DNA of 64,000 nt. Source: Mobula birostris (taxonomy: Eukaryota). Position numbers and translations under genes: made by a program. Positions 6,182-62,902 of the stretch are shown here, one piece after another. The notes beneath the pieces were generated by a model. It saw nothing but the letters and a program-made list of their open reading frames with translations, was not told where the DNA came from and did no database searches. The first letter of the stretch is position 1. Every line of letters starts with the position of its first letter. Location of the stretch: assembly GCF_030028105.1 (NCBI RefSeq), contig NC_092383.1, positions 87,811,921-87,875,920 of the forward strand, in the 5' to 3' direction.

Positions 6182-6505
6182 GCTCAACTGCATTAACTGG
6201 ACCTGAGAAGGTCAGAGGAGTAGAGGGAGAATCAGTCACTGTGGAATGTCGGTATGATCAGAAATACAAGGACTACGTGAAGAAATGGTGTAGAGGTGAA
6301 GCTTACTTTGGTTGTCAGGATCTGGTTTCGACTGAGCAGCCACAAAATGGACAAGTATCAATGACTGATAACAAAACACAAGGGATATTTTCAGTAACCA
6401 TGGATAATCTAAAGATGAGTGACGAAGGGCTATACCAGTGTATAATACAAAGGGCAATGTTGATACCGAGCGAAAGGTTTACCATTTCACTGGAGGTTTC
6501 TGAAG
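6182..6505 (+). CDS. Gene 1, V-type Ig domain exon of a CD300/CMRF35/pIgR-like receptor
   Basis: Acceptor tctcttcacag ends 6181, donor GTATGT starts 6506; 324 nt, phase 1-1. Translates (G)STALTGPEKVRGVEGESVTVECRYDQKYKDYVKKWCRGEAYFGCQDLVSTEQPQNGQVSMTDNKTQGIFSVTMDNLKMSDEGLYQCIIQRAMLIPSERFTISLEVSE. Has the V-set B-strand Cys, DxGxYxC, and the extra WC...C pair typical of the CD300/pIgR/TREM family. Confidence 0.9.
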
Positions 6506-8065
6506 GTATGTTAATTTTTTTTTTCACTCTCCCAGCCTGGGAATTTCCTCCCTCACCTCTGGGTGAAGTAAAAATATTCTTTATATGCCCTCTAAATCTT
6601 TTATTCCTCACCTTAAACTTCAGTCCCTGGTTACATATGCTGTGAGCCGAAGTTTACCACGAAAAATGCCATCTATTCCCCATATAGTTCGGCAGATATC
6701 AGTCAGTCCCCCTTCAGTCTTCACATCCCCAAAAAGAACAACCCAGTCTCTCTAGTCTTTCCACATAATTTTATTGTTACATACCAGGCAACATCCCGGT
6801 GAATCTCCTTTGCAGCCTCTCGGCCCTGCTCCCTGTCCTTCCCACAAACTGCTCATTACAACTGCACTAAAAGAATGGTTGGGATTTCTGACAATCTGAA
6901 CAAAATACAAAATTCAAAAAGTCTGAGGATTGTAGGTAACATACCAAATCTCCTCAAACTGCGAACGAAATATAGTCTTTTTCATAGCTGCATCGATATG
7001 TTGGAACCAGACTAGGTCCTCATACCTAATGACACCCAGGAACTTGAAATTGCTCCCCCTCTCCACTTCTGATCCTTCTCTGAGGATTAACATGTGTTCC
7101 CTCATCTTACCTTTTTGAATTTAAATAGTAAGCTCTTTGGTCTTGAATGCACTGAGTGCAAGGTTGTTCCTGTGACACCACTCAACTAGCTGGTAGATCC
7201 CACTCCTGTATGCCCTCTCGTCACCATCTGAAATTCTGCCAACAATGGCTGTACCATCAGCAAATTTCTGGATGACATTTGAGACATCACAGACATTTAC
7301 ACCACATGCGGCATCCGCAAAGCAAACAGCATTATGAAGGACCCCAAGCACCCCTCATAAAAACTCTTCTCCCTCCTGCCATCTGGAAAAAGGCACCGAA
7401 GCATTCAGGATCTCACGACCAGACTATGTAACAGTTTCTTCCCCCAAGCCATCAGACTCCTCAATACACAGAGCCTGGCTTGGCACCAACCTACTGTACC
7501 CTCCACTGTGCCTATTGTCTTGTTTATTAATTATTATTATTTATTGTAGTGCCTGCACTGTTTTGTGCTCTTTATGCAATTCTGGGTAGGTCTGTAGTCT
7601 AGTGTAGTTTTTGTGTTTTTTCTGACGTAGTTCAGTGTAGTTTTTGCATTGTTTCATGTAGCACCATGGTCCTGGAAAACGTTGTCTCATTTTTACTATG
7701 TTCTGTACCAGCAGTTATGGTTGAAATGACAATAAAAAGTGACTTGACTTGACTTGACTTGAGCTGTGCCTAGTTATGGTTGTCTCGGGAATACTTTATA
7801 CTTTTACTTCATTGTCGTCAAACAATTGATACCAGAGTGTACAATCATCACAACGATATTTGATTCTGTGCTTCGTGCTCTCTGGAGTACAAATCGATAG
7901 TAAATATTAAAAATGTAAATTATAAATCATAAATAGAAAATAGAAAAGGGAAAGTAAGGTAGTGCAAAAAAAACAAGAGGCAGGTCCAGATATTTGGAGG
8001 GTACGGCCCAGATCCGGGTCAGGATCCATTCAGCAGTCTTATCACAGTTGGAAAGAAGCTGTTCC

Positions 8066-9424
8066 TGTCACAATGGGGTGCTGGGAATGGACCCAAATGC
8101 AAGACACAGACACTTATGTACAAGGAACAGGACTTGAGTAGAGTAGGGTCGTGACAGGATACAGAGAAGGAGCAGAGACAAGAACGTAGACTAGGACTTG
8201 GACCCCGAGCCAGAGACTGGACAAGGACCCAGAACCTGGATCTTGCCTCGGGCTTGGGCCCCAGAACCAAGCACGGACATGACATGATTGCAGGACTGGA
8301 GGCTGGGGTCTTGAGGCTAGAGGCTTGGAGACAAGCTTGGGGTCTTGAGGCTTGAGGCTTGGAGACAGGCTTGGCTTGAGGTCTTGGATCTTGAGTTTGG
8401 CTGCTGGCTGGGGTCTTGGATCTTGAGCTTGGCTGCCGGCCGGGGTCTTGGATCTGGGGTCTTGGTCTTGAGGCCTGCCGGCTGGGGTCTTGGGTCTTAG
8501 GTCTTGGGTCTAGGGTACTTCGAGGCTTAGGTATGGACTCCGAGCCAGAGACTCGGAGGACCCAGAATCTGGGACTTGACTCGGGCTTGGACTCCAGAAC
8601 TAGGCAAGGACAAGACGAGGCCACAGGGCTGGACATGGCTTGGGTGTGGAACTCCTGGGTAGGGCGAGACACACAGACAGGTAAAGGCACATGGACAGGA
8701 CTCGGATAGGGCTGGACTAGGCACAGACTGGATGAGGGCCTTCAGGAGCATGGAGCCTTGGACTAGAAGAGACAGGAGCACAGAACACAGAGCTGGGACA
8801 CCTCCTTGGGAACAGGACATAGGGCCGGGACTCACACACATAACACAGAGCTGGGACCCCTCCTTGGGAACAGGACGTAGGGCCGGGACTCATACACAGA
8901 ACACTGAACATGAAGAGACAGATCCCAACACAAGGCGGTGGCAAACGGCGGGATCCACCTCGCGAAGGCGTGGACACAGAGACAGATCCCAACACTGGGT
9001 GGCAGCAAATGGCCAGACCCACCTAGCGAAGGCATGAACACAGAAGCAGATCCCAACACTAGGTAACGGCAAACAGCCGGACCTACCTAGCGAAGGCGTG
9101 GATCCAGAGAGACAATTCCACACAACGAAAGACAGTTCCTTATCTTGACCTAACAAGGCTCTGGTCTTGCTCCGGCAGTAAGACTTCAGCGATACAGGCG
9201 GGGTATCCAGGCTAGGTGAGCAGCCAGAGAGTCAGGCGAGGTATCCAGGCAGAGAGTCAGGCGAGTGGGGAAAGACAGGGATGGGAACAGGACAGTCCAG
9301 TAGGGAATCCCTAGTTTGCAGAGGTATTTATGTCTCAGCCCCAAAACGAGAAACATGTGACCACAACAGAAACTGGGGAAAACCAGAAATCCCAGAACAA
9401 GGAACCATAGACCGGACTATGACA
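8066..9424. mobile_element. Solo LTR (1359 bp), probably Gypsy-class, with internal tandem repeats
   Basis: Termini TGTCA...TGACA, flanked by 5-bp TSD GTTCC (8061-8065, 9425-9429); empty site present at ~5100 and ~41743. Internal GGGGTCTTGAGGCT-like repeats and ~60-bp repeat units. Confidence 0.9.
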
Positions 9425-10493
9425 GTTCCCAAATCTGGCCGTATGAGTCTTCAAGCTCCTGAGCCTTCTCCCAGAGGGACGAGGGATGAGAAATGTGTTG
9501 GCTGGGTGGATCGTGTCCTTGATTATCCTGGCAGCACTGCTCCGACAGCGTGCAGTGTAAAGCGAGTCCAAGGACGGAAGGTTGGTTTGTGTGATGTGCT
9601 GGGCTGTGTTCACGATCTTCTGCAGCTTTGTCCGGTCTTGGACAGGACAACCTCCATACCATGTTGTGATGCACCCTTTGGATGGTGTATCTATAAAAAT
9701 AAGTGAGAGTTTTAGGGGACAAGCCAAATTTCTTTAGCTTTCTCAGGAAATAAAGGCCCGGGTGGGCCTTCTTGGCAGTGGACTCTGCTTGGTTGGGCCA
9801 AGTCAGGTCATTTGTGACATTAACCCCAAGGAACTTAAAGATTTTGACCTGTTCCACTTGCGCACCACTGATGTAAATGGAGTTGTGTGGTCCGCTACTC
9901 CCTCTGAAGTCAACAACCAATTCCATCGTCTTGCTGACGTTGAGGGATAGGTTATCGTCTTCACACCATGCCACCAGGTTCTTAATTTCCTTTCTGTACT
10001 CAAACTCATCATTACCCGAGATACGGCCTACATTTATGGTGTCATCAGCAAACTTATATATTGAGTTCGATGGAAACTAGGCTGCACAATCATGGGTATA
10101 CAGTGAGTACAGTAGGGGGCTGAGTACACAGCCTTGTGGGGCACCCCAAGAAGAGAAGCTGGCTAAACTCACATCCCTGAGAAGAGCCAGTGTTGATTGT
10201 CAGCAAGCTGGAGACGTTACTTCCAATCTGCACAGATTGAACCAACAGACCAACAGAAGAAACAGCAGATGCACAAGTTGGAAATGCCTAACTGAGCGAT
10301 TCCACTTTCACTGTAACTTCAAGAACAAGCTCAGTGAAATAAGGATTAACATCAGGGATAAAATATTAAAGTGGAACATGATCTCCGCAAAATCATGGAA
10401 TTTTCTGAACAACTGAAATGATGAGTTTATATTGCTTACTGCACTTTGTTCTGGTGACGTGTGAGTGACCTTTCATTATTAATCTCTTCACAG

Positions 10494-10816
10494 GCTCAAC
10501 TGCATTAACTGGACCTGAGAAGGTCAGAGGAGTAGTGGGAAAATCAGTCACTGTGGAATGTCGTATGATCAGACTAACAAGGACTACGTGAAGAAATGGT
10601 GTAGAGGTAAAACTAAAGTTGGTTGTCAGGATCTGGTTTCGACTGAGCAGCCACAAAAAGGACAAGTATCAATGACCGATAACAAAACACAAGAGATATT
10701 TTGAGTAACCATGGACAATCTGAAGATGAGCGAAAAAGGGCTATACCAGTGTATGATAGAAAAGGAAATGTGAAAACCGAACGTAAGGTTTACCATTTCA
10801 CTGGAGGTTTCTGAAG
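10494..10816 (+). pseudogene. Second, inactivated V-domain exon inside gene 1
   Basis: Paralogous to 6182-6505 with intact AG/GT, but 323 nt: 1-nt deletion at CGG>CG (~10563). In the restored frame there are TGA stops at 10702-10704 and 10771-10773. Confidence 0.9.
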
Positions 10817-10863
10817 GTACGTTAATAATTTTCTTCACTCTCCCAGCCTGGGAATTTCCTCCT

Positions 10864-10995: not shown

Positions 10996-12400
10996 TTCAG
11001 ATCACTATTTAGAAAGATTCCAGAAATTACACTCAGTGCCCATTTTACGGCTACTGAGGTATGTTCATAATCAATAAAATGTGAGAACACAGCTTTCAGG
11101 AAGGTGATGACTGCTTTGCTGGATGTTGATTGCAGTGTTGCAATATCTGGGTAATTGGAAAAGTAGTTTGTTACAACAATGTGATTCTTCCCATTACAAT
11201 CAAACAAACCCACTCCAACATTGAAGTACCAGCTGTCTGGTACAGGTGTTGGTGTAAGCAGTTCTGCTTGCTAATTTCTTGTCTGTAGGTAAGGCCTATT
11301 TCACATGAAGCGATGGTCTGGTTGATGTCTCAGTTTATTCTTGACCAGTATATCACTTCACAAGCTCTACGTTTACATCTTCTTCACCAAGATGCCCTTT
11401 GTACATCCTCTGGAGCATTTCCTTGCATAGCAGCACCAGAATCACAAAACTGTTCCATTTGAGGACCATACCTTTCACTACGAACAGTTCAGCTCTGGAT
11501 GCCCAAGAATCCTGAATACTCATTGGACAGTCATTCTTCGCTGCTGTCAATGCTTTCCATATTGTATCTTTGAGTTCTTTCATTGTTTTACCTGACCCTG
11601 CTGCTTTCCTAATCTGCTCTGTTCTTCTTGGAGATATTGGAAGGGAGGTGCTAATCATGTCAACAAAGACCTGTATATCTGAATTAACTTCTTGATCAAT
11701 CTGTTCTTTCTCATAAATTGCACAAGACAACGCATCAGCAGCAAACTTTTATTTTCCCACAGTGTAGATCATCTTCACATCATATTTCTGCAGCCTTCTC
11801 AACATGTGCTGTATCCTCATGGGACAGTCATTCAGTGGTTTGGACAGGAATGAGACCAATGGTTTATGGTCTGTCTCCACTTCAAAATCTTGTCCATAGA
11901 TGTACTGATGGAACTTTTTGCATGCATATTTGCTGGCGAGAAATGCTTTCTCTATTTGTACGTAGTTGTCTTCCACGCTTGCTAAAACCCTTGACGCACA
12001 GGTCACAGGTTGACATATGTCATCATGCTGCTGCAGTAGTACTGTTTCAAAGCCATTTCGGGACGCATCAGCTGAGGTCCTAGTACACTTTTCTGGATCA
12101 TAAAACTTCAGCCTGTCTCTTCAGTTATGACTCTTTTCTCTTTTCAGCATTTGAAAACAATCTTCTTGCCCATGAGATAACTTTTGATGCTCAAGCAGTG
12201 ACATAAGTGGTTTGACACAGCTGATAGTTAAGGGTGAATGTAGCCAGATAAATCACCATCCCCAAGAAATGTCTCAGCTCCTCTTTGTTTATGGGCCTCT
12301 CCATGTTTTCAGCGTCCGACGTCTTTCTTGGGGCAGCCACGACACCCGCTTCAGATATGACATTGTGGTGAACTCCTCGCATTGCCCACTGGAAACTGAA
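10995..12400 (-). mobile_element. Degenerate Ty3/Gypsy pol fragment (RT, RNase H, integrase)
   Basis: Minus-strand motifs LFDCNGKNHIVVTNYFSNYP, VETDHKPLVSF, RIQHMLRRLQKYD, RHFLGMV; many stops. Copies ~44200-45620 and 54573-54660 (partial). Confidence 0.85.
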
Positions 12401-15150: not shown

Positions 15151-15523
15151 CTCTAACCTCTATCCTTGAAAGAATAAAGAAATAGATAATTCTTCATTCT
15201 TTCTAATGGTTTTTTGTTGCATGTTGCATCAACAAACACCACAGTAAATTCCAAATACGTGTAAATGTAAATAGTAAATAAAATGTATCCTTGATCCTTA
15301 ACGCTTCGCTTATGGTACTTGGCCATCTGAAGATGACTTCAGCAGGAGGGGACTGCATTGGATCACCAGACTGGAAATTCTTGCTCAAACCGCTGGTATC
15401 AGGTTTGAACCAAGAATCAACCCGCACATTGCAGGAGACCTCCTAGCTGGGGCACTGCAGACACATCATGGAGACAGAAATTGCTTTAAGACATTCAATG
15501 AGCAGATATTTGATCCACTTTAG

Positions 15524-15650
15524 CTCCAGAAAAGAAGGCAACCACCTTGGAAATTTCCACTGAAACCATGTGGACCACTTCACCTCAGAATGAGATGTCC
15601 ACCAGGAAAGCAGAATCCACTGAGTCTTCAGTTTCCTCACGTCAGATCAG
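15524..15650 (+). CDS. Gene 1, Ser/Thr-rich stalk exon
   Basis: Acceptor ccactttag, donor GTTAGT at 15651; 127 nt, phase 1-2; (A)PEKKATTLEISTETMWTTSPQNEMSTRKAESTESSVSSRQI. Phase fits the V exon and TM exon; an open paralogue lies at 57512. Confidence 0.8.
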
Positions 15651-15769
15651 GTTAGTCATTTCATGGGACAATTTGGCTTTACCTCAGCATTACAGTATTC
15701 AGAGAACAACTCACAGTAAATATCAGAGGAAAATGCAACTTTATCAGTACAGTAATATAGTGAAACTCA

Positions 15770-15870
15770 CACGAAATGCTGGAGGAACTCAGCAGATCAG
15801 GCAGCATCTATGGAAATGAATTAACAGTCAACATCTTGGGCCAAGACCTTTCATCAGGACAGGAAAGGAA
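15770..15870 (-). mobile_element. Penelope-like element terminal fragment
   Basis: Reverse complement gtcctgatgaaaggtcttggccc...gatgctgcctgatctgctgagttcctccagc; longer paralogue ~57745-58110. Confidence 0.65.
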
Positions 15871-15899
15871 TGGAGGAGATATCACCAAGAATCTATAGA

Positions 15900-17596: not shown

Positions 17597-17599
17597 CTC

Positions 17600-18785: not shown

Positions 18786-18829
18786 ACAGTACAGTAGCCA
18801 CCCCTACAGGCAATGTTTTGATCATCTAC

Positions 18830-21340: not shown

Positions 21341-21454
21341 TCCATCAGGAACACAACGGAAAATTCACCACTTTTGGGCTCTGACCCGCTGGATAGTCTT
21401 TGGAGTTCTGGTTCTTTGCACCGTTTCAATACTTTGCATGACAGCTGTTCAAAG
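21341..21454 (+). CDS. Gene 1, transmembrane exon with intramembrane Arg
   Basis: Acceptor attttcttag, donor GTATAT at 21455; 114 nt, phase 2-2; (S)PSGTQRKIHHFWALTRWIVFGVLVLCTVSILCMTAVQ(R). Read-through past the donor would stop at TGA 21516-21518. Confidence 0.8.
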
Positions 21455-23769: not shown

Positions 23770-23851
23770 ACAAGCAAATGAGAAAGTCCATGAAAAGCAG
23801 AACCTACGACTAAGACAAATCAGCCCAGTTTCCAGACCAGAGATTCGCTGA
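23770..23851 (+). CDS. Gene 1, terminal cytoplasmic exon (short, no tyrosine)
   Basis: Acceptor ttctgtttttctag; phase 2 entry gives (R)QANEKVHEKQNLRLRQISPVSRPEIR-stop (TGA 23849-23851), followed by AATAAA at 23980. Confidence 0.65.
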
Positions 23852-32873: not shown

Positions 32874-33065
32874 GGAACTGGTTTCTTTGACTACTGCCTG
32901 AAAAAGGAAGTGACTAACTCAAACAGAACTCAGACACCCAACCCACTCGACACAGCTGGAACAGGGGGTGGTGCAGGGTGAATCTACCCACCAGAAAAGG
33001 CAGAGAACTACAGGAACAATTCCTGTGTAGGTTCTTACCTCTGTTGACATTTCATCAGATAAATA
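32874..33065 (+). pseudogene. Decayed copy of the receptor promoter and leader exon
   Basis: Colinear with 34121-34312 (aggaact.gtttctttga...aaggaagtgac...gcagggtgaa...caccagaaa...tctgttg...atcag.taaat). It lacks the ATG, and the donor reads ATAAAT instead of GTAAAT. Confidence 0.7.
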
Positions 33066-34209: not shown

Positions 34210-34306
34210 ATGGAGTTGCTGCAGGGTGAAGTCACTCACCAGAAACGGCCCAGGATTGTGGAATCTATCGCTTTCTTGTTTCTCATCTCTGTTGGTTTCA
34301 TATCAG
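34210..34306 (+). CDS. Gene 2, leader (signal peptide) exon
   Basis: ATG in strong context (A at -3, G at +4); MELLQGEVTHQKRPRIVESIAFLFLISVGFIS(G) ends in a hydrophobic h-region. Phase-1 donor GTAAAT at 34307 matches the phase-1 acceptor of the V exon at 42824, giving ...ISGSTA/LTEP. Confidence 0.7.
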
Positions 34307-41400: not shown

Positions 41401-44400
41401 TTTGCTTTTTGATTCTGTACTGCAAGAGCTCAGGGAAACCAGCATCAAGTTCTCTGTATGTGTCCACAGACATGGCGATAATAAAGGATTCTGATTCTGA
41501 TTCTGATTTTTATTCTAGGGAGTACAATCATCACAGCAATATTTGATTCTGTGCTTCCTGCTCCCTGGAGTACAAATCGATAGTAAATATTAAAAATTTT
41601 AATTATAAATCATAAATAGAAAATAGAAAAGGGAAAGTAAGTTAGTGCAAAAAAACCAAGAGGCAGGCCCAAATCTTTGGAGGGCACGGCCCAGATCCAG
41701 GTCAGGATCCGTTCAGCAGTCTTATCACAGTTGGAAAGAAGCTGTTCCCAAATCTGGCCGCACGAGTCTTCAAGCTCCTGAGCCTTCTCCCGGAGGGAAG
41801 AGGGACGAAAAGTGTGTTGGCTGGGTGGGTCGTGTCCTTGATTATCCTGGCAGCACTGATCCGACAGCGTGCGGTGTAAAGTGAGTCCAAGGACGGAAGA
41901 TTGGTTTGTGTGATGTGCTGGGCTGTGTTCACGATCTTCTGTAGCTTCTTCCAGTCTTGGACAGGACAACTTCCATACCAGATGTGATGCACCCTAGAAG
42001 AATGCTTTCTACGGTGCATCTATAAAAATTAGTGAGGGATTTAGGGGACAGGCCAAATTTCTTTAGCTTTCTCAGGAAGTAAAGGCACTGGTGGGCCTTC
42101 TTGGCAGTGGACTCTGCTTGGTTGGACCAAGTCAGGTTTATTTGTGATATTGACCCCGAGGAACTTAAAGCTGTTGACCTGTTCCACTTGCACACCACCG
42201 ATGTAAATGGGGTCGTGCTGTCCGCTACTCCTTCTGAAGTCAACAACCAATTCCTTCATCTTGCTGATGTTGAGGGATAGGTTATTGTCTTCACACCATG
42301 CTACCAGGTTCTTAATTTCCTTTCTGTACTCAAACTCATCATTACCCGAGATACGGCCTACAATTGTGGTGTCATCAGCAAACTTATATATTGAGTTCGA
42401 TGGAAGCTTGGCTACACAATCATGGGTGTACAGTGAGTACAGCAGGGGGCAGAGTACACAGCCTTGTGGGGCACCCCAAGAAGAGAAGTTGGCTAAACCC
42501 ACATCGCTCAGGAGAGCCAGTGTTGATTGTCAGCAAGTTGGAGATGCTACTTCCAATCTGCACAGATTGAACCAACAGACCAACAGAAGAAACAGCAGAT
42601 GCACAAGTTGGAAATGCCTAACTGAGCGATTCCACTTTCACTGTAACTTCAAGAACAATCTCAGTGAAATAAGGATTAACATCAGGGATAAACTATTAAA
42701 ATGGAACATGATCTCTGCAAAATCATGGAATTTTCTGAACAACTGAAATGATGAGTTTATATTGCTTACTGCACTTTGTTCTGGTGACGTGTGAGTGACC
42801 TTTCATTATTAATCTCTTCACAGGCTCAACTGCATTAACTGAACCTAAGAAGGTCAGAGGAGTAGTGGGAGAATCAGTCACTGTGGAATGTCGGTATGAT
42901 CAGAAATACAAGGACTACGTGAAGAAATGGTGTAGAGGTGATTCTAACATTGGTTGTTCCGCCGTGGTTTCGACTGACCAGCCACGAAGTGAACGAATAA
43001 CAATGACTGATTACAAAACACGAGGGATACTTTCAGTAACCATGGACAATCTAAAGATGACTGATGAAGGGCTATACCAGTGTATAATACAAAGGGCAAT
43101 GTTGATACCGAACGAAAGGTTTACCATTTCACTGGAGATTTCTGAAGGTACGTTAATATTTTTCTTCACTCTCCCAGCCTGAGAATTTCCTCTCTCACCT
43201 CTGGATGAAGTAAAAATATTCTTTATATGCCCTCTAAATCTTTTATTCCTTACCTTAAACTTCAGTCCCAGGTTACATACGCCGTGAGCCAAAGTTTACC
43301 ACAAACAATTCCATCTATTCCCCATATAGTTTGGCAGATATCAGTCAGTCCCCCTTCAGTCTTCACCTCCCCAAAAAATACAATCTAGTCTCTCTAGTCT
43401 TTCCACATAATTTAATCGTTGCCTATCAGGCAACATCCCGGTGAATCTCCTTTGCAGCCTCTCCGCCCTGCTCCCTTATCCTTCCTACAAACTGCTCATT
43501 ACAACTGCACTAAAAGAATGCTTCGGATTTCTGACAATCTGAACAAAATACAAATGATAAGAAGTGGGAATCCTTTGCTGAACAGTTAACAGATTACATT
43601 ATCTCTGTCTCAATTATTAAAGAGATGAAATCTTGAACATTATTTTCACATCCCTATGGGAAATTACCAGAGCATTTTATATCCACCCTTCACCTTTACC
43701 CTTCCTTTCTCCCCCTCTCCACACTGATCACTCTCCCCTTCCTCAGTGTTCTTCCTTCTCTCTCCATCCCCACAAACCCTATTCCCACTCTCCCATCTCA
43801 GATGCTCCAGTTTCCCAGCAGTGGGAGTTCGAGGCCAGGCCTTTTCCCTGTAGTCCCAGCAGTGGACAGACTGGGATCAGGAACCTTCTGCTTTCACTCT
43901 GTCACCTTGGTTCAGCACAGAAATTTTGACCCAGTGGGATCTGCGCTTGTGACCAACAGCAAGAGCCCAGCTTCGGTGTGGGAGATGTCCCAGTATGGAT
44001 GGAGGGGGAAATGCAGTCCCAGCTGCTGAGGGGATTTTCAGGGAACTGGGACACTCTCAGGAACATTCTTTGACCAGGAACACAATAGCTCATCTGGAGA
44101 GTGTCCACAGAAATCACTACTTTCCTCAAAACTGATGATAGCAAAAAGGTTGATCATGGACTTTCACCAGAAATAAATTCCCCAAAATAAAAGGAACTTT
44201 TTCAGATCACTATTTAGAAAGATTCCAGAAATTACACTCAGTGCCCATTTTATTATGCATTGCCTTTACCTAATAAAGAGGCTACTGATGTATGTTCATA
44301 ATCAATAAAATGTGAGAACACAGCTTTCAGGAAGGTGATGACTGCTTTGCTGGATGTCGATTGCAGTGTTGCATTATCTGCGTAATTGGAAAAGTAGTTT

Positions 44401-47802: not shown

Positions 47803-50720
47803 TCAAACCCTGCCTCCCATAAAAGCCCCCACCTTAAATTCCTCCATATACCTGTCTAGTAGTCTCTTAAACTTCGCTAGTGTATCTGCCTCCACCACTG
47901 ACTCAGGCAGTGCATTCCACGCACCAACCACTCTCTGAGTAAAAAATCTTCCTCTAATATCCCCCTTGAACTTCTCACCCCTTACCTTAAAGCCATGTGC
48001 TCTTATATTGAGCAGTGGCGCCCTGGGGAAGAGGCGCTGGCTATCCACTCTATCTATTCCTCTTATTATCTTGTACACCTCTATCATGTCTCCTCTCATC
48101 CTCCTTCTCTCCAAAGAGTAAAGCCCTAGCTCCCTTAATCTCTGATCATAATGCATACTTTCTAAACCAGGCAGCATCCTGGTAAATCTCCTCTGTACCC
48201 TTTCCAATGCTTCCACATCCTTCCTATAGTGAGGTGACCAGAACTGGACACAGTACTCCAAGTGTGGCCTAACCAGAGTTTTATAAAGCGGCATCATTAC
48301 ATCGCGACTCTTAAACTCTATCCCTTGACTTATGAAAGCTAACACCCCATAAGCTTTCTTAACTACCCTATCCACCTGTGAGGCAACTTTCAGGGATCTG
48401 TGGACATGTACCCCGAGATCCCTCTGCTCCTCCACACTACCAAGTATCCTGCCATTTACTTTGTACTCTGCCTTGGAGTTTGTCCTGCCAAAGTGTACCA
48501 CCTCACACTTCTCCGGGTTGAACTCCATCTGCCACTTCTCAGCCCACTTCTGCATCCTATCAATGTCTCTCTGCAATCTTTGACAATCCTCTACACTATC
48601 TACAACACCACCAACCTTTGTGTCATCTGCAAACTTGCCAACCCACCCTTCTACCCCCACATCCAGGTCGTTAATAAAAATCACGAAAAGTAGAGGTCCC
48701 AGAACAGATCCTTGTGGGACACCACTAGTCACAATCCTCCAATCTGAATGTACTCCCTCCACCACCACTCTCTGTCTTCTGCAAGCAAGCCAATTCTGAA
48801 TCCACCTGGCCAAACTTCCCTGGATCCCATGCCTTCTAACTTTCTGAATATGCCTACCGTGTGGAACTTGACGAATGCCTTACTAAAATCCATATAGATC
48901 ACGTCCACTGCACTACCCTCATCTATATGCCTGGTCACCTCCTCAAAGAACTCTATCAGGCTTGTTAGACACGATCTGCCCTTCACAAAGCCATGCTGAC
49001 TGTCCCTGATCAGACCATGATTCTGTAAATGCCTATAGATCCTATCTCTAAGAATCTTTTCCAACAGCTTTCCCACCACAGACGTAAGGCTCTCTGGTCT
49101 ATAATTACCCAGACTATCCCTACTACCTTTTCTGAACAAGGGGACAACATTCGCCTCCCTCCAATCCTCCGGTACCATTTCCGTGGACAACGAGGACATA
49201 AAGATCCTAGCCAGAGGCTCAGCAATCTCTTCTCTCACCTCATGGAGCAGCCTGGGGAATATTCTGTCAGGCCCCGGGGACTTATCTGTCCTAATGTATT
49301 TTAACAACTCCAACACCTCCTCTCCCTTAATATCAACATACTCCAGAACATCAACCTCACTCATATTGTCCTCACCATCATCAAGTTCCCTCTCATTGGT
49401 GAATACTGAAGAGAAGTATTCATTGAGGACCTCGCTCACTTCCACAGCCTCCAGGCACATCTTCCCACCTTTATCTCTAATCGGTCCTACCTTCACTCCA
49501 GTCATCCTTTTTTTCTTCACATAATTGAAGAATGCCTTGGGGTTTTCCTTTACCCCACTCGCCAAGGCCTTCTCATGCCCCCTTCTTGCTCTTCCAAGCC
49601 CCTTCTTAAGCTCCTTTCTTGCTTCCCTATATTCCTCAATAGACCCAGCTGATCCTTGCTTCCTAAACCTCATGTATGCTGCCTTCTTCCACCTGACTAG
49701 ATTTTCCACCTCACTTGTCACCCATGGTTCCTTCACCCTACCATTCTTTATCTTCCTCACCGGGACAAATTTATCCCTAACATCCTGCAAGAGATCTCTA
49801 AACATCGACCACATGTCCATAGCACATTTCCCTGCAAAAACATCATCCCAATTCACACCCGCAAATTCTAGCCTTATAGCCTCATAATTTACCTTTCCCC
49901 AATTAAAAATTTTCCTGTCCTCTCTGATTCTATCCTTTTCCATGATAATGCTAAAGGCCAGGGAGCGGTGGTCACTGTCCCCCAGATGCTCACCCACTGA
50001 GACATCTGTGACCTGACCCGGTTCATTACCTAGTACTAGATCTAGGATGGCATTCCCCCGGTCGGTCTATCCACATACTGTGACAGGAATCCATCCTGGA
50101 CATACTTACCAAACTCTGCCCCATCTAATTCCTTGGAACTACTCAGGTGCTAATCAATATTAGGGAAGTTAAAGTCACCCATGATAACAACCCTGTTATT
50201 TTTGCACCTTTCCAAAATCTGCCTCCCAATCTGCTCCTCTGTATCTCTGCTGCTACCATGGGACCTATAGAATACCCCCAACAGAGTAACTGTTCCCTTC
50301 CTGTTCCTGATTTCCACCCATATTGACTCAAAAGAGGATCCTGCTACATTACCCACCCTTCCTGTAGCTGTAATAGTATCCCTGACCAGTAATGCCACCC
50401 CTCCTCCCCTTTTTCCGCCCTCTCTATCCCTTTTAAAGCACTGAAATCCAGGAATATTGAGAATCCATTCCTGCCCTGGTGCCAGCCAAGTCTCTGTAAT
50501 GGCCACTACATCATAATTCCATGTATGTATCCAAGTTCATCGGCTTTGTTCCTGATGCTTCTTGCATTGAGGTACGCACATTTCAGCCCTTCTACCTTAC
50601 TGTCTTTACACTGTTTATTCTGCTTCTCTTTCCTCAAAGCCTCTCTGTATGTTAGATCTGGCTTTACTCCATGCACTTCTTTCACTGTTCTATCACTCTG
50701 GGTCCCATCCCCCTCGCAAA
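47803..50720 (-). pseudogene. CR1 ORF2 (APE endonuclease + reverse transcriptase), disrupted
   Basis: Segments 50150-50506 (ITETWL, GDFNFP), 48729-49997 (SDHRSL, QHGF) and 47803-48813 (PQGSVLGP, FADD) are split by frameshifts or stops. Confidence 0.92.
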
Positions 50721-51746
50721 TTAGTTTAAACCCTCCCGAACCACGCTAGCAAACCTACCTGCAAGGATATTGCTCCCCCTCGGGTTCAGGTGCAACCCAT
50801 CCAATCTGTACAGGTCCCACCTTCCCCAGAAGAGATCCCAATGATCTGAAAATCTAAAACCCTGCCCCCTGCACCAACTCCTCAGCCACGCATTCAACTG
50901 CCATCTCCTCCAATTCTTACCATCACTGTCACGTAGCACTGGCAGCAATCCTGAGAACGCCACCCTTGAGGTCCTGTTCTTCAGCCTCCTGCCTAGTTCA
51001 AGAAACTCACACTTCAGGACCTCATCCCTCTTCCTGCCTATGTCGTTAGTCCCAAAATGTATCACGACTTCTGGTTGCTTTCCCTCTCGTACCAGGATGT
51101 CGCGCACCCGGTCACAGACATCCCGGACCCTGGCACCCGGGAGGCAACAAACCATGCAGGTGACCTTCTCACGTCCACAAAATCTCCTGTCTGCTCCCCT
51201 GACTATAGAGTCTCCAATGACGACAGCTCTCCTCTTCTCCGTCCCACCCTTCTGCACCACAGGGTCAGACTCAGTGCCGGAGGCCCTGCCACCGTGGCTC
51301 ACACCTGGTCAGTCGTCCCCGCCAACAGTATCCAGGACGGTAAACTTATTATTCACGGGAATGGCTACAGGGGTGCTCTGCACTACCTGTCTGCTCACAT
51401 TCGCTTTCCCCCCTCTGACTGTCACCCAACGACCTGCTTCCGACAGCCCAGGTGTGACTACCTCCCTGTAGCTCTCATCTATGACTGCCTCATTCTCCCT
51501 TATGAGTCGGAGGTCATACAGCTGCTGCTCCAGATTCCTTACACGGTCTTCCAGATCGCCCAGCCGTATACACTTCTGGCAGATGTGACTCTGCGTGAGA
51601 GGGGAGTTCCCCCAAGACTGCCACATCTCACTTGAGAGGCACATCACCGTCTCAGGAGACATTGTAAAAACTAACTGTGAGCAAGCTTGTCCTCCGCCTC
51701 TTCTTGTCGAAGCCTCAAAGCTCCCCTCCTTCGCTGGCCCACTCAC
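50721..51746 (-). pseudogene. CR1 ORF1 (Cys-rich/coiled-coil N-terminus + SGNH esterase), one in-frame stop
   Basis: ORFs 51309-51746 and 50721-51302 are in the same frame, separated by the stop at 51309-51311; motifs GDSI, GTND, DGLHL. Confidence 0.9.
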
Positions 51747-54700: not shown

Positions 54701-57511
54701 TGAGTATATTTCCCAGAAAAAAACCTGCTCACATGAGCAAGTTCCTGGGTAGGCTCCATAGCGTGTTGCTCTGAAATTATTTCCTAATGTACTCTACAAT
54801 TTTTTTCTCTTTGAAACCCTCGTCAGTTTGGTGCTTGCAATCAATATGAAGGAGCTGGTCATTGATATTAGAAAGTAGGATGCAGTACATGATTGTATCT
54901 GTATCACTAATGCAGAGTTGGAGATGGGTGAGAACTTCAGTCACAGCTGTAGATATCACTAAGAATTTGTCCTGGCCCCTCCATATAGATGCTACAATAA
55001 CAAAGCACATTGACCTGCTACTTCATCAGAAGCTTAAGGGAATTTGGCATCTCTAAAGACTCTCGTCAATTTTTGCTGATGCACCACAGAAAGCATCCTG
55101 TTTGGATGAATCACTATTTTTATAGCAACTGCTCTGCCGAAGACCACAAGAGCTGTGAACACAGTTCAATCCATCAGTAAAACCAGTCTCCCTTCTGTGG
55201 TCTCTCTCTGTACTTCTGTCTCTTGTCTCTGGCTCATGAAAGCATCCATCAAAACTCAAGGACCCCTTTCACCCTGATAATTTGCTCTTCTCCCTCCTCC
55301 TGTCTATCAGAAAGTGCAAATGCTTGAGAGCGTGTACCACCAGGCTCAAGGACACCTTCTGTACCACTGTGAACAGATCCTGAGCAGACCTTTCAGATAC
55401 TCAAAGCTGAACCTCAGATCTTCCAATCTACCTCATTGTGTTCCTTGCATTTCCCTGCAACTGCATATTACAGTCTGCATTCTGATTTCTTTTTACTGCC
55501 CTGACATACTGATGTAGAGAATGATCTGTCTGGAGGGAGTTCAAACAAAAGCTTTCCACTGGATCTCGGTACATGTGACAATAATCAAACAATTCCAATT
55601 CCCACTAAACGTTCCTGTGACTATTGCAGTTCCCATCAAACATGCCCTAGTGATTTCCACATTTACGCTCTGCACTAACATAGGGCCACATTTTGGAAGG
55701 GTGTAGAAAACTCTTGTCTTAGCCTTGTACTTTGGAATTTTAACCCATTCTGACTCTATGTTACTACCCACAGACTCAACCCTAACAACTCAACACCACT
55801 CTGACATCTTTCCTGATTAATAACACATACACCATCGCCTTTCCTTTATGTCCATTTGTTTTGGAACATTCTGCATGAATGAGTACTCAGTTCTGTTCAC
55901 TCTGTAAACATACAATTTCCCCCAAGCCTCTCATAATCCTTCATCAGAAACTCCATCCTAGTCCCACCTTTATCCTCAGTACCAATGTTGATCATGGCAT
56001 CGTACCCCTCCCCTAATCTCAACTTTTTCTTCAGCTCAGAAGGAATGTCCTTCACCCTAACAGCACACAGACAACACAGCTTGTGGAATTCTGAAAGTAC
56101 TAAAAGAAGTTTAATAACGTGCATAAGAGTAAGAAGGAATCTCATCCCTTTTGTTACACCATTCCATTACTAATGATCTATTATCTCTCTCAACCCCATT
56201 CTCCTATCTTCTCCCTGTAACCTTTGACAATGCAGATCAACCAAGAACCTGCAAACCCCTGAACTTAAATATACCCCATCACCTGGCTTCGACAGATATC
56301 TGTTGCAATGAACTACACAGTTTTTTTTAATATTCATTTAGTTTCAGTGAGACCTCCCCACATCATTTTTCCAAACATCAGCAAGTATAAGCCCAGAGCA
56401 ATCAAATGCAACTTAAATGTTAATGCTTTCATTCCCAGAATCATTCTTGTGATCCTCTCCAATCCCAGCACAACTTTTCTTCAATAAGAGGCCTAAAACT
56501 GCTCACAATACTCTGTGCGATCTGACCAATGGCCTTATGAAGACATGGTGTTACATCATTGCTTTTATATTCTTGTCCTCTCAATTGCCTTCCATGCCAT
56601 TTCCTCAAACTGCAAGTTAACCTTTAAGGAATTCTGCAAAAGGAATCCCAAGTCCCTTTGTACCTCTCATTTTTGAATTTTCTCCTCATTTAGAAAATAG
56701 TCTATGTCTTTGTCTGTCTAAAACCTTGTGCAGGTTCCCCGCCTCCTCAAAATTACCTGTCTTTTCACCTATCTTTAAATCGTCTGTAAATCTGGCCACA
56801 AAGCAATCAATTCCGTCATCCAAATCATTGGCATATAATGTGAAAAGAAGTGGACCCAAAATCAAACCCTGTGAAACACCACTAGTCACCAGCAGCTTAC
56901 CAGATACGTCCCCCTTTATTCCCACTCTTGCCCCCTGCCATTCAGCCCATAATCCATTTATGCTGGTATCTTTCCTTCAATACCACAGGCATTTAACTTG
57001 TTATCAACTTCATGCCTGGTTCCTTGTCAAAGGCCTTTTGAAAATCCAAGCAAACAACATCCACTGACTCTCCTTTGTGTATCCTGTTTGTTATTTCCTC
57101 AAAGAATTGCAACAGGTATTTCAGGCAAAATTTCCCCTTTCCTCTAACCTCTATCCTCGAAAGTACAAAGAAATATAAAATTATTTATTTATTCTAATTG
57201 TTAAGGGTTCTTTCTTCATTGCATGTTGCATCAACACACACCACAGTAAATTCCAAATATGTGCAAATAAAATTTATCCTTGATCCATGATACCCAACTC
57301 ATGGGGTTTAGCCATTTGAAGATGGCTTCAGCAGGAAGGCACTGCAGTGAATCACCAGCCTAAACAGTATTACTCAAAACCCTGGTGTAGATTTGAACCA
57401 AGAATCTCCCCGCACATTGCCAGAGACATTCCAACTGGGGCACTGCTGATACATAATGGAGATAGAAATTGCTTTGAGACATTCAGTGTTCAGATATTTG
57501 ATCTACTTTAG

Positions 57512-57632
57512 CTCCAGAAGAAGAAATTTCCACAAAAAGCGTATGGACCACGTGGACCACCTCACCTCAGAATGGGATGCACACCAGGAAAGGAGAATCC
57601 ACTGACACATCAGTTTCCTTACATCCGATCAG
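57512..57632 (+). CDS. Gene 2, Ser/Thr-rich stalk exon
   Basis: Acceptor ctactttag, donor GTTAGT at 57633; 121 nt, phase 1-2; (A)PEEEISTKSVWTTWTTSPQNGMHTRKGESTDTSVSLHPI; paralogue of 15524-15650 with in-frame indels only. Confidence 0.75.
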
Positions 57633-60600
57633 GTTAGTCATTTCATGGGACAATTCAGCTTTACCTCAGCATTACAGTACTCAGAGAACAACTCACAGTA
57701 AATATCAGAGGAAAGTGTAGCTTTACAGTAATACAGTGAAACTCACATGAAATGCTGGAGGAACTCAGCAGGTCAAGCAGGATCTATGGAAATGAATTAA
57801 CAGTCGCCATCTTGGGCCAAAATCTTTCATCAGGACTAGAGAGGAATGGAGAAGATACCAGAATAGGAAGGTGGGGGAGGAGTGTATGGAAGGAGGGCAA
57901 GCTAGTAGTACATGATAGGTGAAGCCAGTTGAGTATGGCGGGGTGCAAGTGGGGTGAAGTAGGAAGCTTGCAGTGATAAGTAGAAATGAGACCGGGCTGG
58001 AGAACAAGGAGTCTGAGAGGAGAGGAGCGTACATCATGAGGATCATGGGGAAAATAGAAGGAGGAGGAGATTCAGACAGTGGAGATAGGCAGGTGATGAG
58101 AAGAGGTGGCAAAGACTTATAATTTCCCTGGTCCAGATGATCTGCATCCTAGGGTACTAAAGGAGGTGGGTACTAAATTAATGGGGTGTCATGGTTGTGT
58201 AGCAGTTAGATTAACACTATTACAGCTCCAGAAACTCAGGTTCAATTCCCGTCGCTGTCTGTAAGGCGTTAGTACATTCTCCCTGCGATCGCGTGGGTGT
58301 TCCAGATTCTTCCCACTTTCAAAATATATGTGTGTTAAGGTTGGTGAGTTGTGGGCACTGGAAACATGGCAACACTTGCAGGCTGGCCCCATCATATCCT
58401 TGGGTTGTGTTGGTTGCTGAAGCAAACAACGTATTTCGCTATGTTTCAATGATAATATGACAAATAAAGTTAATCTTTATAAAGATATTTAATGTTTGTA
58501 TTGGCATGGAGAGAGAAATGATCAACAGGTAGGAAGCAGTGAATAGGGACAATGGGGTCAACTTCAAATTACAGGGCAGTGCCACAAGGCTGATGTTTGC
58601 AATGTTTGCCCTCCTGCTTCAAAACATCCACCATTATTCCTGTACCTAAAAAGACAAAGGTAACATGTCTGAATGACTAGTGTCTTGTTGCACTCACCTC
58701 AATAATAAACAAATTCTTTGAGAGGCTGGTCCAGGACTACACCTGCAGCACACTACCACCCGTACTGGACACCCTGCAATTCACCTACCGGCACAACTGA
58801 TCGACAGATGACACAATAGCCACAGCTATACACACCATCCTTACACATCTGGAGATGAAGGATTTTATAAGAGAGAATGCTGTTCTTAGACTACAGTTCA
58901 GCATTCAACACCATAATTCCCTTCAAGCTGGACAAGAAGCTCAGAGACCTCGGCCTTCACCCTGCCTTGTGCAGCTGGATCCTGGACTTCCTGTCACCTC
59001 TGCCCCTCTGACCCTCAACACAGGAGCCCTTCAGGGCTGTATTCTAAGCTCTTCCTTTACTCTCTGTACACTATGACTGTGCCACCACCCACAGCTCCAA
59101 TCTGCTAATTAAATTTGCTGATGATACTACATTGATTGGCCTTATCTCAAATAATAATGAGGCAACCTACAGAGAAGAAGTCATCACCCTGACACAGTGG
59201 TGTCAAGAGAACAACCTCTTCCTCAATGTTACAATAACAAAGGAGCTGATTGTGGACAACAGGAGAAATGGAGACAGACTAACCCTTATTGACATCAATG
59301 GATCTGGGGTTGAGAGGGTGAACAGCTTTAAGTTCCTCAGTTTGTGTGGTGAAAAAAGCACAACAGTGCCTCTTTCACCTCAGACAGTTAAAGAAGTTTG
59401 GCATGAGTCCCCAAATCGTAAGGAGTTTCTCCAGGGGCACAATTGAGAGCATCCTGACTGGCTGCATCACTGCCTGGTTGGGAGATGTACTTCCCTCAAT
59501 GGCAGGACTCTGCAGAGGGTGGTGCGGACAGCTCAACGCATCTGTACATGTGAACTTCCCACTATTCAGGATCTTTACCAAGACAGGTGCCTAAAAAGGG
59601 CCGGAAGGATCATTGAGTATGCCAACCACAAACTGTTTCAGGTGCTATCATCGGGGAAATGGTACCGCAGCATTAAAGCCAGGAACAACAGGCACTCACA
59701 CCAGGCCATCAGACTGACTAATTCAGGCTGATGCAATTGTATTTCTATGCTAGATTGCCTGTCCTGTTCTACATACTATAAATTACACATTGCACATTTA
59801 GACAGAGACATAACGTAAAGATTTTAACTCCTCATGTATATGAATGATGTAAGAAATAAATTCAATTCAATTCCAATATACGGTACAGTAGCCACCCCTA
59901 CAGGCAATGTTTTGATCACCTTCCTACAGAAAAGGTGCCAATAAGGTTGAAAGAGTACAGAAAAAAAATTCAAGGATGTTGCCAGGATGGGAAGAGTTAT
60001 ATGGGGAGATTGAATAGGTTAGGACTTTATTTCTTGGAAAGTATGTGGTGTATAGATAGGATAAATGCAAGTAGTTTTTTTTTCCACTGAAGTTGGGTGC
60101 AACTGCAACTAGAGATTATGGGTTAAGGGTGAAAGGTGAAATGTTTAAGGGAAACATGACAGGAAACATCTTCACTCAGAGTGTTGTGAGTGTGTGGCAT
60201 GAGCTACCAGTGCAAGTGATGTATGCGAGCTCAATTTCAATGTTTAAGAGAAGTTTAGATAGCTACGTGGATGGGAGGGGTATGGCAGGCTATGACCCAG
60301 ATGCAGGCCAATGGGAGTAGACAGCTTAAATGGTTTGGCATGGACTGGATGGGCCAAAGGGCCTGTTTCTCTCCTGTACTTTTCTACTTCACTATGACTC
60401 AATGTAAAGATAGGCAGGAAAGTAAGCTGTGAGGTGGGTAATAATTCACAGAGATTCTGAAAGATTAAACGAGTGGACGAAGATGTGAAGTTGATACTTT
60501 GGAAAGATGAGCAAAAGAACATTAAAGCTATTTGAGTAGAGAAGAAACTGCAGAAAGTTGCAGTGTTAAAAGGTTTGGGTATCCTTGTGCACAGAAAGCC

Positions 60601-62306
60601 AGCACATAGTGAATCAGGATGGGAAGACTAATGGACTGTTAGCCCTTTCTTCACCAGGGTTGGAGTATCATGGCAGGGAAGTCTTCTGGTTGCTAATGAG
60701 ACCTCATTGAGAGTATCGTGAATAATTTTGATCTTCCTATTTATGAAAAGATTTCATGAAGGCAGTTCAAAGAAGGATCTCTGGGATGTTCCTGGAGGGA
60801 TCCTGGAGGCCTGGAGGGGTTGTCCAACAAAGTTAAAAGTTCAGCATTTTGCAACACTAGACTTTGATGCATACTCTAATGAGTGTGCAGTCTAGTTTTA
60901 GAAGGATGCAAGATGATCTTATTAAAATATATAAAATTTTTTCTGGGGGTGATCAACATCAATTGTGAGAGGGGAGCACAAAAGACTGCAGATGCTGGAA
61001 TCTGAATGAAAAAATAGCAAGCCCCTGGAGGAACACAATATGTCAAGTTGCCAAACCTCTGCATCAGGGGTGAGAGAGTAAAGAGCAGACCGCCAGTATA
61101 AATAGGTGAGAGTGGTAGGGGTAGATACGTGATAGGTAGGACCAGATGATGTGGGGTTAATGGGCAGGTAAGGGTGGGGGACAGGAGAGTTGAGACACAA
61201 GAGGCTGCTGGGTGATCGGGAAGAAGAGATAAGGACCTAAAAAAAGTCAGGTGGAGTCAAGTGGGTGAAGTCAGAGGCTGGAGGGTGATAAGTGGAACTT
61301 GATGAAAGTATGATAGCCAGTTAGAACCAGATAGGGAGGAAAGCAATACAGAGGGTAAGGCCAAGGGAAAAGAAACCCAGGTGGATAAGTGTATAAGTGA
61401 GTAATGGGCAGGGGGAGAGGGAAAGGTGAGTAGAGGGAGAGGGAATGAGGATTGGTGGGATTGGGAAGGAACATGAAGGTGTTGATCAGTCTATTGTCTT
61501 GGGAGAAGTAACTGGTTTTGAGTCCAGTGGTCCCGGTGTGGATATTGTATAGTCTCTTTCCTAATGGGAGTGAGACGAAGAGATGGACAGGATGGCTGTG
61601 ATCCTTCATAATATTGCTGGCCTTTTACCAGTACCTTTCTGTACGTACTGCATGTCCTTGAAAAGCATCGGGAAAAGGCTAGCAATATCATGAAGGAACA
61701 TTCTACAGGGATCTGCCATTTACTGTGTAAGTCTTGCCTTGGTTTAGCTTCCCAAAATGTAACACTTCACACTATTCCTAATTAAATTCTATCTGCTATT
61801 CTTTGCCCCACTCTCCAAATCGATGAAGATCCTGTTATAATCAAAGAAAACTTCTTTATTGTCCACTAAACACCAATTTTAGTGTCATCTGCCTGGAAAC
61901 TATATGAGTCGTGCCAACTACTTGCTCATCCAAATGGTTAATATGGACAACAAACAAGTGGGTACATAGCACCATTTCCTGCGGTGCAGGGCTCAGTACT
62001 GAAAAATAACCCTCCAATTCATCCCTCTGACTCCATCCACCAGAACAATTCTATATCCTCCACTTCAGCTGGCTGCAAATTCTACACTCTCACCAACCTC
62101 TGATTGAAGAAGTTCACCCTCATATTCCCCTTAAACATTTCACTGTTCACACCTAACCCATGACCTCAAGTTCTAGTCTCACCCAACTTCAGTGGAAAAT
62201 AGCTTGTGAGCATTTACCCTGTCTAAACCCCTCATAATTTTGTAAACCTCTATCAAGTCTCGCTTCATTTCTCAATGCAACAGGGAATGAAGTCCTAACA
62301 TTTTCA

Positions 62307-62712
62307 TATACCGTCTAGGTAGTCTCCAGCCCCTTGGTATGAACATAGAATTCTCCAACTTCTGGTAATTCCCTCCCGCTCCCCTCCTCTATCCCTATGT
62401 CACTCTGCCCCCTCCTCCAGCTGCCTATCACCTCCCTCATGGTTCCGCCTCCTTCTACTACCCATTGTGATTTCTTCTATTCCTTCCTCACCTCCCTGCT
62501 TCCCCTCCCCCATCCCTTTATCCTTTCCCTTACTGGTTTTTCACCTGGAACCTACCAGCCTTCTCCTCTCCACCCTCCCCCCACCTCCTTTATAGGGCCT
62601 CTGCCCCTTCCCTCTACAGCCCTGACGAAGGGTTCCGGCCCGAAACGCCGACCGATCTTTTCCACGGATGCTGCCCGACCTGCTGAGTTCCTCCAGCGTG
62701 TGTGAGTGTTAC
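62307..62712 (+). mobile_element. 5'-truncated Penelope-like element, specific to gene 2
   Basis: Flanked by 13-bp direct repeat CCTAACATTTTCA (62294-62306, 62713-62725); pyrimidine-rich body, hammerhead-like 3' motif; single empty site at ~21267 in gene 1. Confidence 0.8.
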
Positions 62713-62794
62713 CCTAACATTTTCAACCTCTCCCTACACTGTTTTGCTTACTGATTACTCTGTGAGCAATAATTATATTTTCTTGGTCCATCAG

Positions 62795-62902
62795 GAACAC
62801 CGAGCAGAAAATTCACTACATTTGGGCTCTGACCCGCTGGATAGTCTTTGGAGTTCTGGTTCTTTGCACCGTTTCAATACTTTGCATGACAGCTTTTCAA
62901 AG
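62795..62902 (+). CDS. Gene 2, transmembrane exon (uses a shifted acceptor)
   Basis: The position equivalent to the gene 1 acceptor reads TGG. The AG at 62793-62794 gives a 108-nt phase 2-2 exon, (R)NTEQKIHYIWALTRWIVFGVLVLCTVSILCMTAFQ(R), with donor GTATAT at 62903. Confidence 0.65.

Follow-up and report, generated by a model that had tools for sequence, protein, structure and literature searches.

The receptor genes of the locus

The window analyzed here is a stretch of 64,000 nucleotides (nt) from the ray Mobula birostris (contig NC_092383.1, positions 87,811,921 to 87,875,920 of the forward strand; ~43% G+C, runs of N absent), and all positions below are those of the window. It carries two exon chains, designated gene 1 and gene 2, of membrane receptors with a variable-type (V) immunoglobulin (Ig) domain, together with a dead V exon (psiV) and a dead leader exon. 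We consider it likely that these are two tandem paralogues, with two relic exons, of an elasmobranch family of CD300-like receptors. The family is probably MDIR, first described in skate, to which it was matched by family description. The receptor region extends from the first base of the gene 1 V exon (V1; 6182) to the last base of the gene 2 transmembrane (TM) exon (TM2; 62902).

A sequence-only reading of this DNA had proposed two exon chains with consistent splice phases and had predicted the peptide order of gene 2, and all of its peptide strings were located on the + strand where it had placed them. Comparison of four gene 2 exon peptides with the window by tblastn yielded three V-exon matches (6184-6504, 10496-10815, and 42826-43146), two stalk-exon matches (15523-15651 and 57511-57633), two TM-exon matches (21348-21452 and 62796-62900), and, for the leader, a good match at 34210-34305 and a degenerate one at 32968-33057. 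Exon borders were taken directly from the DNA (Table 1). The AG/GT borders and the phases (leader 1, V 1-1, stalk 1-2, TM 2-2) confirmed the two exon chains, and all exons assigned to genes 1 and 2 were open, with canonical splice sites. The gene 2 exons splice into a single open frame of 216 codons plus two bases carried over. The spliced product reads MELLQ...ISG/STALTEP...LEISE/APEEE...HPIR/NTEQKIHYIWALTRWIVFGVLVLC... (slashes mark exon junctions), which reproduces the predicted order exactly.

The V domains of the two genes (V1 and V2) showed 78.5% amino acid identity, and the stalks 59%, with an indel. A chance origin is implausible, because the V2 exon scored 6.8e-14 on the Pfam V-set model and V-exon matches to elasmobranch proteins reached 1e-154 to 1e-108. 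By the duplication offset, the leader of gene 1 is expected ~2.5 kb upstream of the window, and the tail of gene 2 is expected ~1.2 kb beyond the window end. A search with 171 fetched proteins revealed no further Ig exons in the window. No non-receptor genes flanking the receptors were found within the window, and transfer RNA and Rfam scans of it gave no matches.

Table 1. Features of the receptor locus in window coordinates
Feature	Position	Strand	Description
Gene 1 V-domain exon (V1)	6182..6505	+	324 nt, AG/GT, phase 1-1, intact
Mosaic patch in V1	6300..6419	+	~120 nt, residues ~39-79, C-C' loop to E strand
Dead V exon (psiV)	10494..10816	+	1-nt deletion in codon 24, two in-frame stops, splice sites kept
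Gene 1 stalk exon, Ser/Thr-rich	15524..15650	+	127 nt, phase 1-2
Gene 1 TM exon with Arg	21341..21454 or 21349..21454	+	contains ..FWALTRWIVFGVLVLCTVSILCM..; two acceptors
Gene 1 cytoplasmic tail exon	23770..23851	+	27 residues, RQANEKVHEKQNLRLRQISPVSRPEIR-stop, no tyrosine; AATAAA at 23980
Relic leader exon	32968..33057	+	no ATG, in-frame stop, donor GT changed to AT
Gene 2 leader exon	34210..34306	+	start codon, signal peptide, GT donor, phase 1
Gene 2 V-domain exon (V2)	42824..43147	+	324 nt, AG/GT, phase 1-1, intact
Patch in V2 matching that of V1	42942..43061	+	counterpart of V1 patch
Nearly whole long interspersed nuclear element (LINE; without long terminal repeats)	47803..51302	-	GDSL-esterase open reading frame (ORF) 1 and reverse-transcriptase ORF2
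Gene 2 stalk exon	57512..57632	+	121 nt, phase 1-2
Gene 2 TM exon with Arg	62795..62902	+	108 nt, phase 2-2

Identity of the V domain

Besides the canonical B-F cysteines, this domain contains an extra C-C' cysteine pair in the arrangement WC-x7-C, and an extra WC...C pair had been noted in the sequence-only reading; C22, W35, C36, C44, and C86 were all present. In a 60-sequence alignment, C22, W35, and C86 were invariant and C36 was nearly so. The AlphaFold model of V2 obtained with this alignment (predicted local distance difference test score, 90.7) assigned C36 to strand C and C44 to strand C'.

The best single-domain match in the PDB by sequence was mouse CD300lf/CLM-1 (5e-17, 64.8 bits). 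Lower scores were obtained for single domains of pIgR (at most 41 bits), NKp44 (41), CD300A (40), TREM1/2 (33-34), and FCMR (24.5). Foldseek against the PDB also ranked mouse CD300lf first (TM-score 0.85-0.90, 33-35% identity), followed by pIgR D1 and CD300A/CD300F, and then TREM. On fold comparison, CD300 members were on top (TM-score 0.89-0.92, 30-35% identity), with pIgR D1 and FCAMR next. In the Swiss-Prot fold list, CD300/CMRF35-like proteins occupied ranks 1-8 and 10-15, TMIGD3 rank 9, and pIgR and FCAMR later ranks. The spliced models likewise showed the CD300-type architecture of a single V domain, a stalk, and a charged TM segment, with a short tail in gene 1. The V-domain searches and the tree described below agree with the assignment to the CD300/pIgR/TREM family and support the interpretation offered by the sequence-only reading. 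Membership in the TREM/NKp44 group was considered and rejected, the scores being 33-34 and 41 bits versus 64.8 for CD300lf, and the charged residue being Arg, not Lys.

Relatives and phylogeny

A HMMER scan of 1.84 billion representatives gave 1945 matches, and a tree of 85 V domains was constructed with IQ-TREE. All top matches were elasmobranch, led by RefSeq models from rays, with Mobula nearest. Identity over all matched stretches was 81% for Mobula hypostoma (87-89%, depending on the alignment, for its second V domain) and 78% for the M. birostris model. Hemitrygon akajei (67-68%) and Narcine (53%) followed, and then skates, sawfish, and sharks; the V domains of the skate relatives P0007 and P0153 were 50-56% identical. 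The nearest models bear the automatic names "polymeric immunoglobulin receptor-like" or "CMRF35-like molecule".

In the tree, V1 and V2 fell inside a clade of Myliobatiformes only (Shimodaira-Hasegawa-like approximate likelihood ratio test [SH-aLRT], 99), nested in an elasmobranch-only clade of 28 domains (99), the sister of which consisted of proteins from non-teleost ray-finned fish and eel (87). V1 paired with domain 1 of M. hypostoma P0004 (SH-aLRT 84), and the nearest domains to V2 were domain 2 of the same model and domain 2 of M. birostris P0003. Elasmobranch domains were mostly grouped by order, a pattern of lineage-specific expansion. The proposed affinity to cartilaginous fish is thus borne out by both the matches and the tree, and tree placement together with the duplication described below agrees with a tandem, lineage-specific cluster. 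The label "single-V" fits gene 2; gene 1 also has a dead V exon, and relatives have one to five V domains.

Similarity to the relatives extended to the other exons. Stalk 1 was 97.7% identical to the stalk of P0004, and the gene 1 tail was 95% identical to the P0004 tail over 20 residues; Hypanus P0162 has the same tail. The protein identity of TM and tail to M. hypostoma was 92-95%, and the gene 2 leader was 74-83% identical to the leaders of the Mobula and Hemitrygon models. The exon junctions also matched those of RefSeq relatives, namely P0004 for V-TM-tail and P0002 for stalk-TM. P0004 reads leader-V-"SEGTQRKIHHFWALTRWIVFGVLVLCTVSILCMTAVQ"-"RQVNEKVHEKQNLRLRQISP", in which the V domain is joined straight to the Arg-TM exon, followed by the tail.

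The automatic name "polymeric immunoglobulin receptor-like" of the nearest proteins would fit true pIgR orthologues, that is, transcytosis receptors for polymeric IgM with J chain. Cartilaginous fish may possess a pIgR. In the PDB search, pIgR chains had the best whole-chain E-values, for the sole reason that their five domains add up. J chain is present in sharks, as cited in one article (PMC9321927). However, each gene has one intact V exon, not two to five tandem V domains, the 27-residue tail leaves no long cytoplasmic region for sorting signals, and the TM segment contains Arg instead of being neutral. CD300lf outscored every pIgR domain and CD300 came first by fold, and turtle pIgR domains branched apart from the elasmobranch clade. 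We therefore regard orthology to pIgR as extremely improbable.

Arginine-containing TM segment and paired-receptor layout

Both genes have an Arg-containing TM segment with the motif W..LRW(I/V)LF. The hydrophobic span is FWALTRWIVFGVLVLCTVSILCMTAV, in which Arg occupies the sixth position, and the gene 1 tail is tyrosine-free. Conservation of the motif extended to Mobula, Hemitrygon, Hypanus, two skates, Narcine, a catshark, sturgeon, paddlefish, and bowfin, and tyrosine was absent from those tails of these relatives that the compared segments included; the M. hypostoma and Hypanus models have a short tyrosine-free tail, as gene 1 does. The combination of the Arg-TM motif with a Cys-containing helix after it is common to CD300-like proteins of elasmobranchs and of early-branching ray-finned fish (P0029, P0141, P0160, and P0161 from sturgeon, paddlefish, and bowfin).

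Hemitrygon P0006 has an ectodomain almost the same as that of P0002, with a neutral TM and the tail motifs VVYASV, STYMNL, and VVYSVV. A neutral TM and a tail with tyrosine motifs were likewise found in Pristis (sawfish), skates, Narcine, and sharks. A search of the window with the C-termini of four relatives at a lax threshold revealed no exons on the + strand for a neutral TM or an immunoreceptor tyrosine-based inhibitory motif (ITIM). Such a distribution is the classical arrangement of paired activating and inhibitory receptors, and we infer that genes 1 and 2 make up the activating side of a system of this kind. The activating type of both genes had not been stated in the sequence-only reading.

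Each gene is predicted to encode a type I membrane protein, in which the signal peptide is followed by one CD300-type V domain stabilized by two disulfides, a Ser/Thr-rich stalk, and a TM helix whose outer third contains an arginine. Ligand would be bound by the V domain, and the partner of the buried Arg would be an acidic residue in an adaptor of the FcR-gamma, DAP12, or CD3-zeta type that carries an immunoreceptor tyrosine-based activation motif (ITAM). This adaptor would then send the signal. FcR-gamma and DAP12 are mammalian partners of receptors with Arg or Lys in the TM segment.

Alternative acceptors at the stalk-TM junction

Gene 1 has two TM acceptors 8 nt apart, at 21341 and 21349. 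When all four combinations were read, the stalk was joined to the TM exon in frame only via acceptor 21341, and direct joining of V to TM was in frame only via acceptor 21349. Because each junction has its own in-frame acceptor, both a stalked and a stalkless form of the gene 1 product are possible. The V-to-TM junction "SEGTQRK" of gene 1 is the same as that of M. hypostoma P0004.

Gene 2 no longer has the upstream AG (TTAG to TTGG) and carries 2 inserted nt (window 62781-62810). Joining of the stalk to 62795 is the sole in-frame choice, and only the stalked form is in frame. The acceptor loss is offset by the insertion, which restores the frame. The resulting junction is HPIR/NTEQK, and its counterpart in Hemitrygon P0002 is HPIR/NTERK.

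Tandem duplication, relic exons, and repeats

Self-comparison by BLAST revealed a tandem duplication of 36-42 kb with 80-97% identity, of which genes 1 and 2 are the two copies. Identity was 95.1% between 3-6911 and 36686-43554, 95.2% between 11049-13189 and 44280-46413, and 92-96% between 17597-22550 and 58693-64000. For the stalk exon and its flanks (14320-15881 versus 56325-57857), it was only 79.5%. Since the stalk region is so much more divergent than the rest (92-97%), the duplicated unit appears to be a mosaic of segments differing in age. Stalk 1 is 98% identical to the M. hypostoma stalk, and stalk 2 is just 58% identical to the same stalk. Genes 1 and 2 are recently duplicated neighbours.

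In copy 1 only, a local duplication of 4.3 kb (5101-6551 to 9425-10862, 92%) is the source of the third V exon, psiV. This exon is considered dead because of its 1-nt deletion and two stops (Table 1). In the FG-loop region, psiV resembles domain 1 of M. hypostoma P0004, which is intact. The relic leader, located 1.2 kb upstream of leader 2, was 70% identical to the leader of the ITIM-type sawfish protein Pristis P0133 versus 47% to leader 2, and for this reason it may be what is left of a third gene that has been lost. Neither psiV nor the relic leader was listed in the sequence-only reading.

Exons spread through repeats had been noted in that reading, and both the self-comparison and the LINE fragments agree with it. 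The LINE at 47803-51302, whose ORF2 is split by a frame break, sits in an insertion of ~8 kb confined to copy 2. The remaining open frames between exons are LINE reverse-transcriptase debris. Three repeat-derived stretches (35905-36097, 47520-47677, and 51998-52054) are used by P0004 as coding exons bridging two receptor genes.

This bridging raises the alternative that all exons belong to one long multi-V gene, like the 565-residue M. hypostoma RefSeq model that spans ~70 kb. The order in P0004 (V-TM-tail, a repeat-derived piece, V-stalk-TM) is the same as in the window, and Hypanus P0162 continues from the tail into the next leader. However, a stop closes the tail exon of gene 1, AATAAA lies downstream of it, and gene 2 begins with an ATG and a signal peptide of its own; we therefore read P0004 and P0162 as fused models. 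The repeat stretch of the M. hypostoma model showed 92% protein identity to window 35954-36097, which indicates an animal closely related to M. hypostoma yet distinct from it. The P0004 bridge is LINE-derived and, in the window, is interrupted by an in-frame stop and a change of frame, and a membrane anchor amid the ectodomain would be topologically senseless. A single gene is thus very unlikely, and the repeat-bridged P0004 is probably a fused gene model in public annotation.

Alternatively, one or both exon chains could be unexpressed relics of a decaying cluster. The window contains a dead V exon and a dead leader, LINEs crowd the introns, one acceptor is missing from gene 2, and the gene models come from genome sequence. 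On the other hand, all assigned exons are open with canonical splice sites, the gene 2 frame is restored by the 2-nt insertion at a junction that Hemitrygon also uses, and TM and tail are still highly similar to the M. hypostoma protein. Decay of either chain is unlikely in our judgment, and two tandem CD300-like receptor genes are preferred.

Several points weigh against this interpretation and against the activating type. Both gene models come from genome sequence, and the window includes neither the leader of gene 1 nor the tail of gene 2. psiV, which lies between V1 and the stalk, has retained its two splice sites, and its inclusion would break the frame. P0004 has, in its second half, a neutral TM spliced to a stalk and a V2-like exon, and gene 2 may therefore use alternative downstream exons. 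More exons are possible beyond the window end, and gene 2 may not be of the activating type only. The docking of Arg to an ITAM adaptor is proposed by analogy with mammalian receptors and from the deep conservation of W..LRW(I/V)LF. Our literature search on ITAM adaptors in cartilaginous fish turned up only one report, which was negative: the 2014 survey of Akula et al. found no FcR-gamma in sharks (PMC4016189).

Mosaic patch in the V domains

V1 and V2 differed at 28 of 321 bases, with 23 nonsynonymous and 2 synonymous codons, and the 600 bases upstream of the two exons were 97.7% identical. Nei-Gojobori counts over the whole exon gave a nonsynonymous divergence (dN) of 0.105 and a synonymous divergence (dS) of 0.052; the ratio (omega 2.0) was not significant (Fisher p = 0.21).

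V1, V2, psiV, and their flanks were compared at informative sites. Inside a patch (Table 1), V1 agreed with psiV at 19 sites versus 6 with V2. Outside it, V1 agreed with V2 at 75 sites versus 14 with psiV (Fisher p = 3e-8 for inside versus outside). Over patch residues 39-69, V1 and V2 were identical at only 14/31 positions, versus 35/38 in each of the two flanking parts. In the same residues, V2 matched domain 2 of M. birostris P0003 at 28/31 positions, and V1 matched domain 1 of M. hypostoma P0004 at 26/31 and psiV at 25/31. In the C-terminal part with the FG loop, V1 was the same as V2 and P0004 domain 2 (AMLIP..), unlike psiV and P0004 domain 1 (EMWKPN). Each of the two types of patch (A and B) was seen again in Mobula and Hemitrygon. 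In the AlphaFold model, the patch comprises the C-C' loop, strand C', the C'' region, strand D, and the start of E. We take these elements to contribute to the ligand-binding end in this V-domain family, as in the CD300lf and pIgR D1 structures.

Because V1 agrees with psiV in the patch and the two types are shared across species, the nonsynonymous excess between V1 and V2 is read as a mosaic of old types, not as fresh selection. Positive selection after duplication was accordingly rejected as a candidate explanation, omega being not significant and the differences lying in one patch whose two types are shared across species. V1 is a recombinant of a type-A patch and the FG loop of V2, and since it combines the two, binding faces seem to be reshuffled among tandem V exons. 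Gene conversion or recombination among these exons is the simplest cause.

A wider proposal, which we put forward tentatively and hold to be rather doubtful, is that the tandem V exons, including dead ones, form a germline pool of binding-surface cassettes. Short conversion tracts would transfer the C'-C''-D patch between exons separately from the FG loop, V1 being one recombinant, and the persistence of the patch types may reflect balancing or pathogen-driven selection. As a separate part of the same tentative proposal, W..LRW(I/V)LF would be an adaptor-docking motif that predates the split between cartilaginous and bony fish. If the proposal is true, conversion tracts would create new combinations for ligand binding.

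Comparison with known receptor systems

Genes 1 and 2 belong to a family that is already known from the skate MDIRs and from many automatically named RefSeq models in elasmobranchs. The unusual feature is that their binding domains are patchworks of two old sequence types. The locus joins the MDIR and annotation evidence for a large, fast-evolving family of paired receptors of the CD300/pIgR type in cartilaginous fish. It adds clean exon models, in contrast to the fused or partial RefSeq models of relatives, an activating-type assignment, an acceptor switch with a compensating indel, and a concrete example of what may be binding-face reshuffling between tandem copies. The Arg-TM motif, conserved from cartilaginous to early ray-finned fishes, could guide a search for the signaling partner. 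Current views are not overturned by these results, which provide useful detail for comparative immunology.

The skate MDIRs (Cannon et al. 2006, Immunogenetics 58:362) are described, in an article that cites the 2006 paper (PMC3031540), as multigene activating and inhibitory Ig receptors with a V-type domain like those of CD300, TREM, and pIgR. The description "poorly characterised" given to such receptors in chondrichthyans is therefore only partly fair, since this account has been available since 2006 and RefSeq names ray and shark genes. Compared by description only, the present genes resemble MDIRs in coming from a cartilaginous fish and in having an activating form here and ITIM forms in relatives. 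MDIRs mix several Ig-domain subfamilies, whereas genes 1 and 2 have the V type only. Word-index protein searches gave few matches each, none of which was named MDIR.

The RefSeq models from M. hypostoma, M. birostris, Hemitrygon akajei, and Hypanus sabinus have V domains 64-89% identical to V2 and share the leader, stalk, Arg-TM, tail, and exon junctions. Unlike the genes described here, they are often partial or fuse neighbouring genes, and none is identical to the window genes.

pIgR and teleost PIGRL belong to the same V-domain superfamily and have the same extra disulfide. pIgR differs from genes 1 and 2 in having 2-5 domains, and also possesses a long tail with sorting signals. Akula et al. 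(2014) found no PIGR-type genes in sharks and placed the first appearance of pIgR-type receptors and FcR-gamma in bony fish (PMC4016189).

The mammalian CD300/CMRF35-like receptors (CD300a-h; mouse CLM-1 to -9) are similar in that a single V domain bearing the extra C-C' disulfide sits on a mucin-like stalk, the C-terminal part is either an ITIM tail or a charged TM followed by a short tail, and the genes lie in tandem clusters. Identity to them was only 30-35%, and there is no one-to-one orthology, because the elasmobranch V domains form their own clade. Most activating CD300 members have Lys or Glu deeper in the TM helix, whereas the ray Arg in W..LRW(I/V)LF lies near the outer face. Unlike mammalian CD300, ray relatives of genes 1 and 2 stack up to five V domains.

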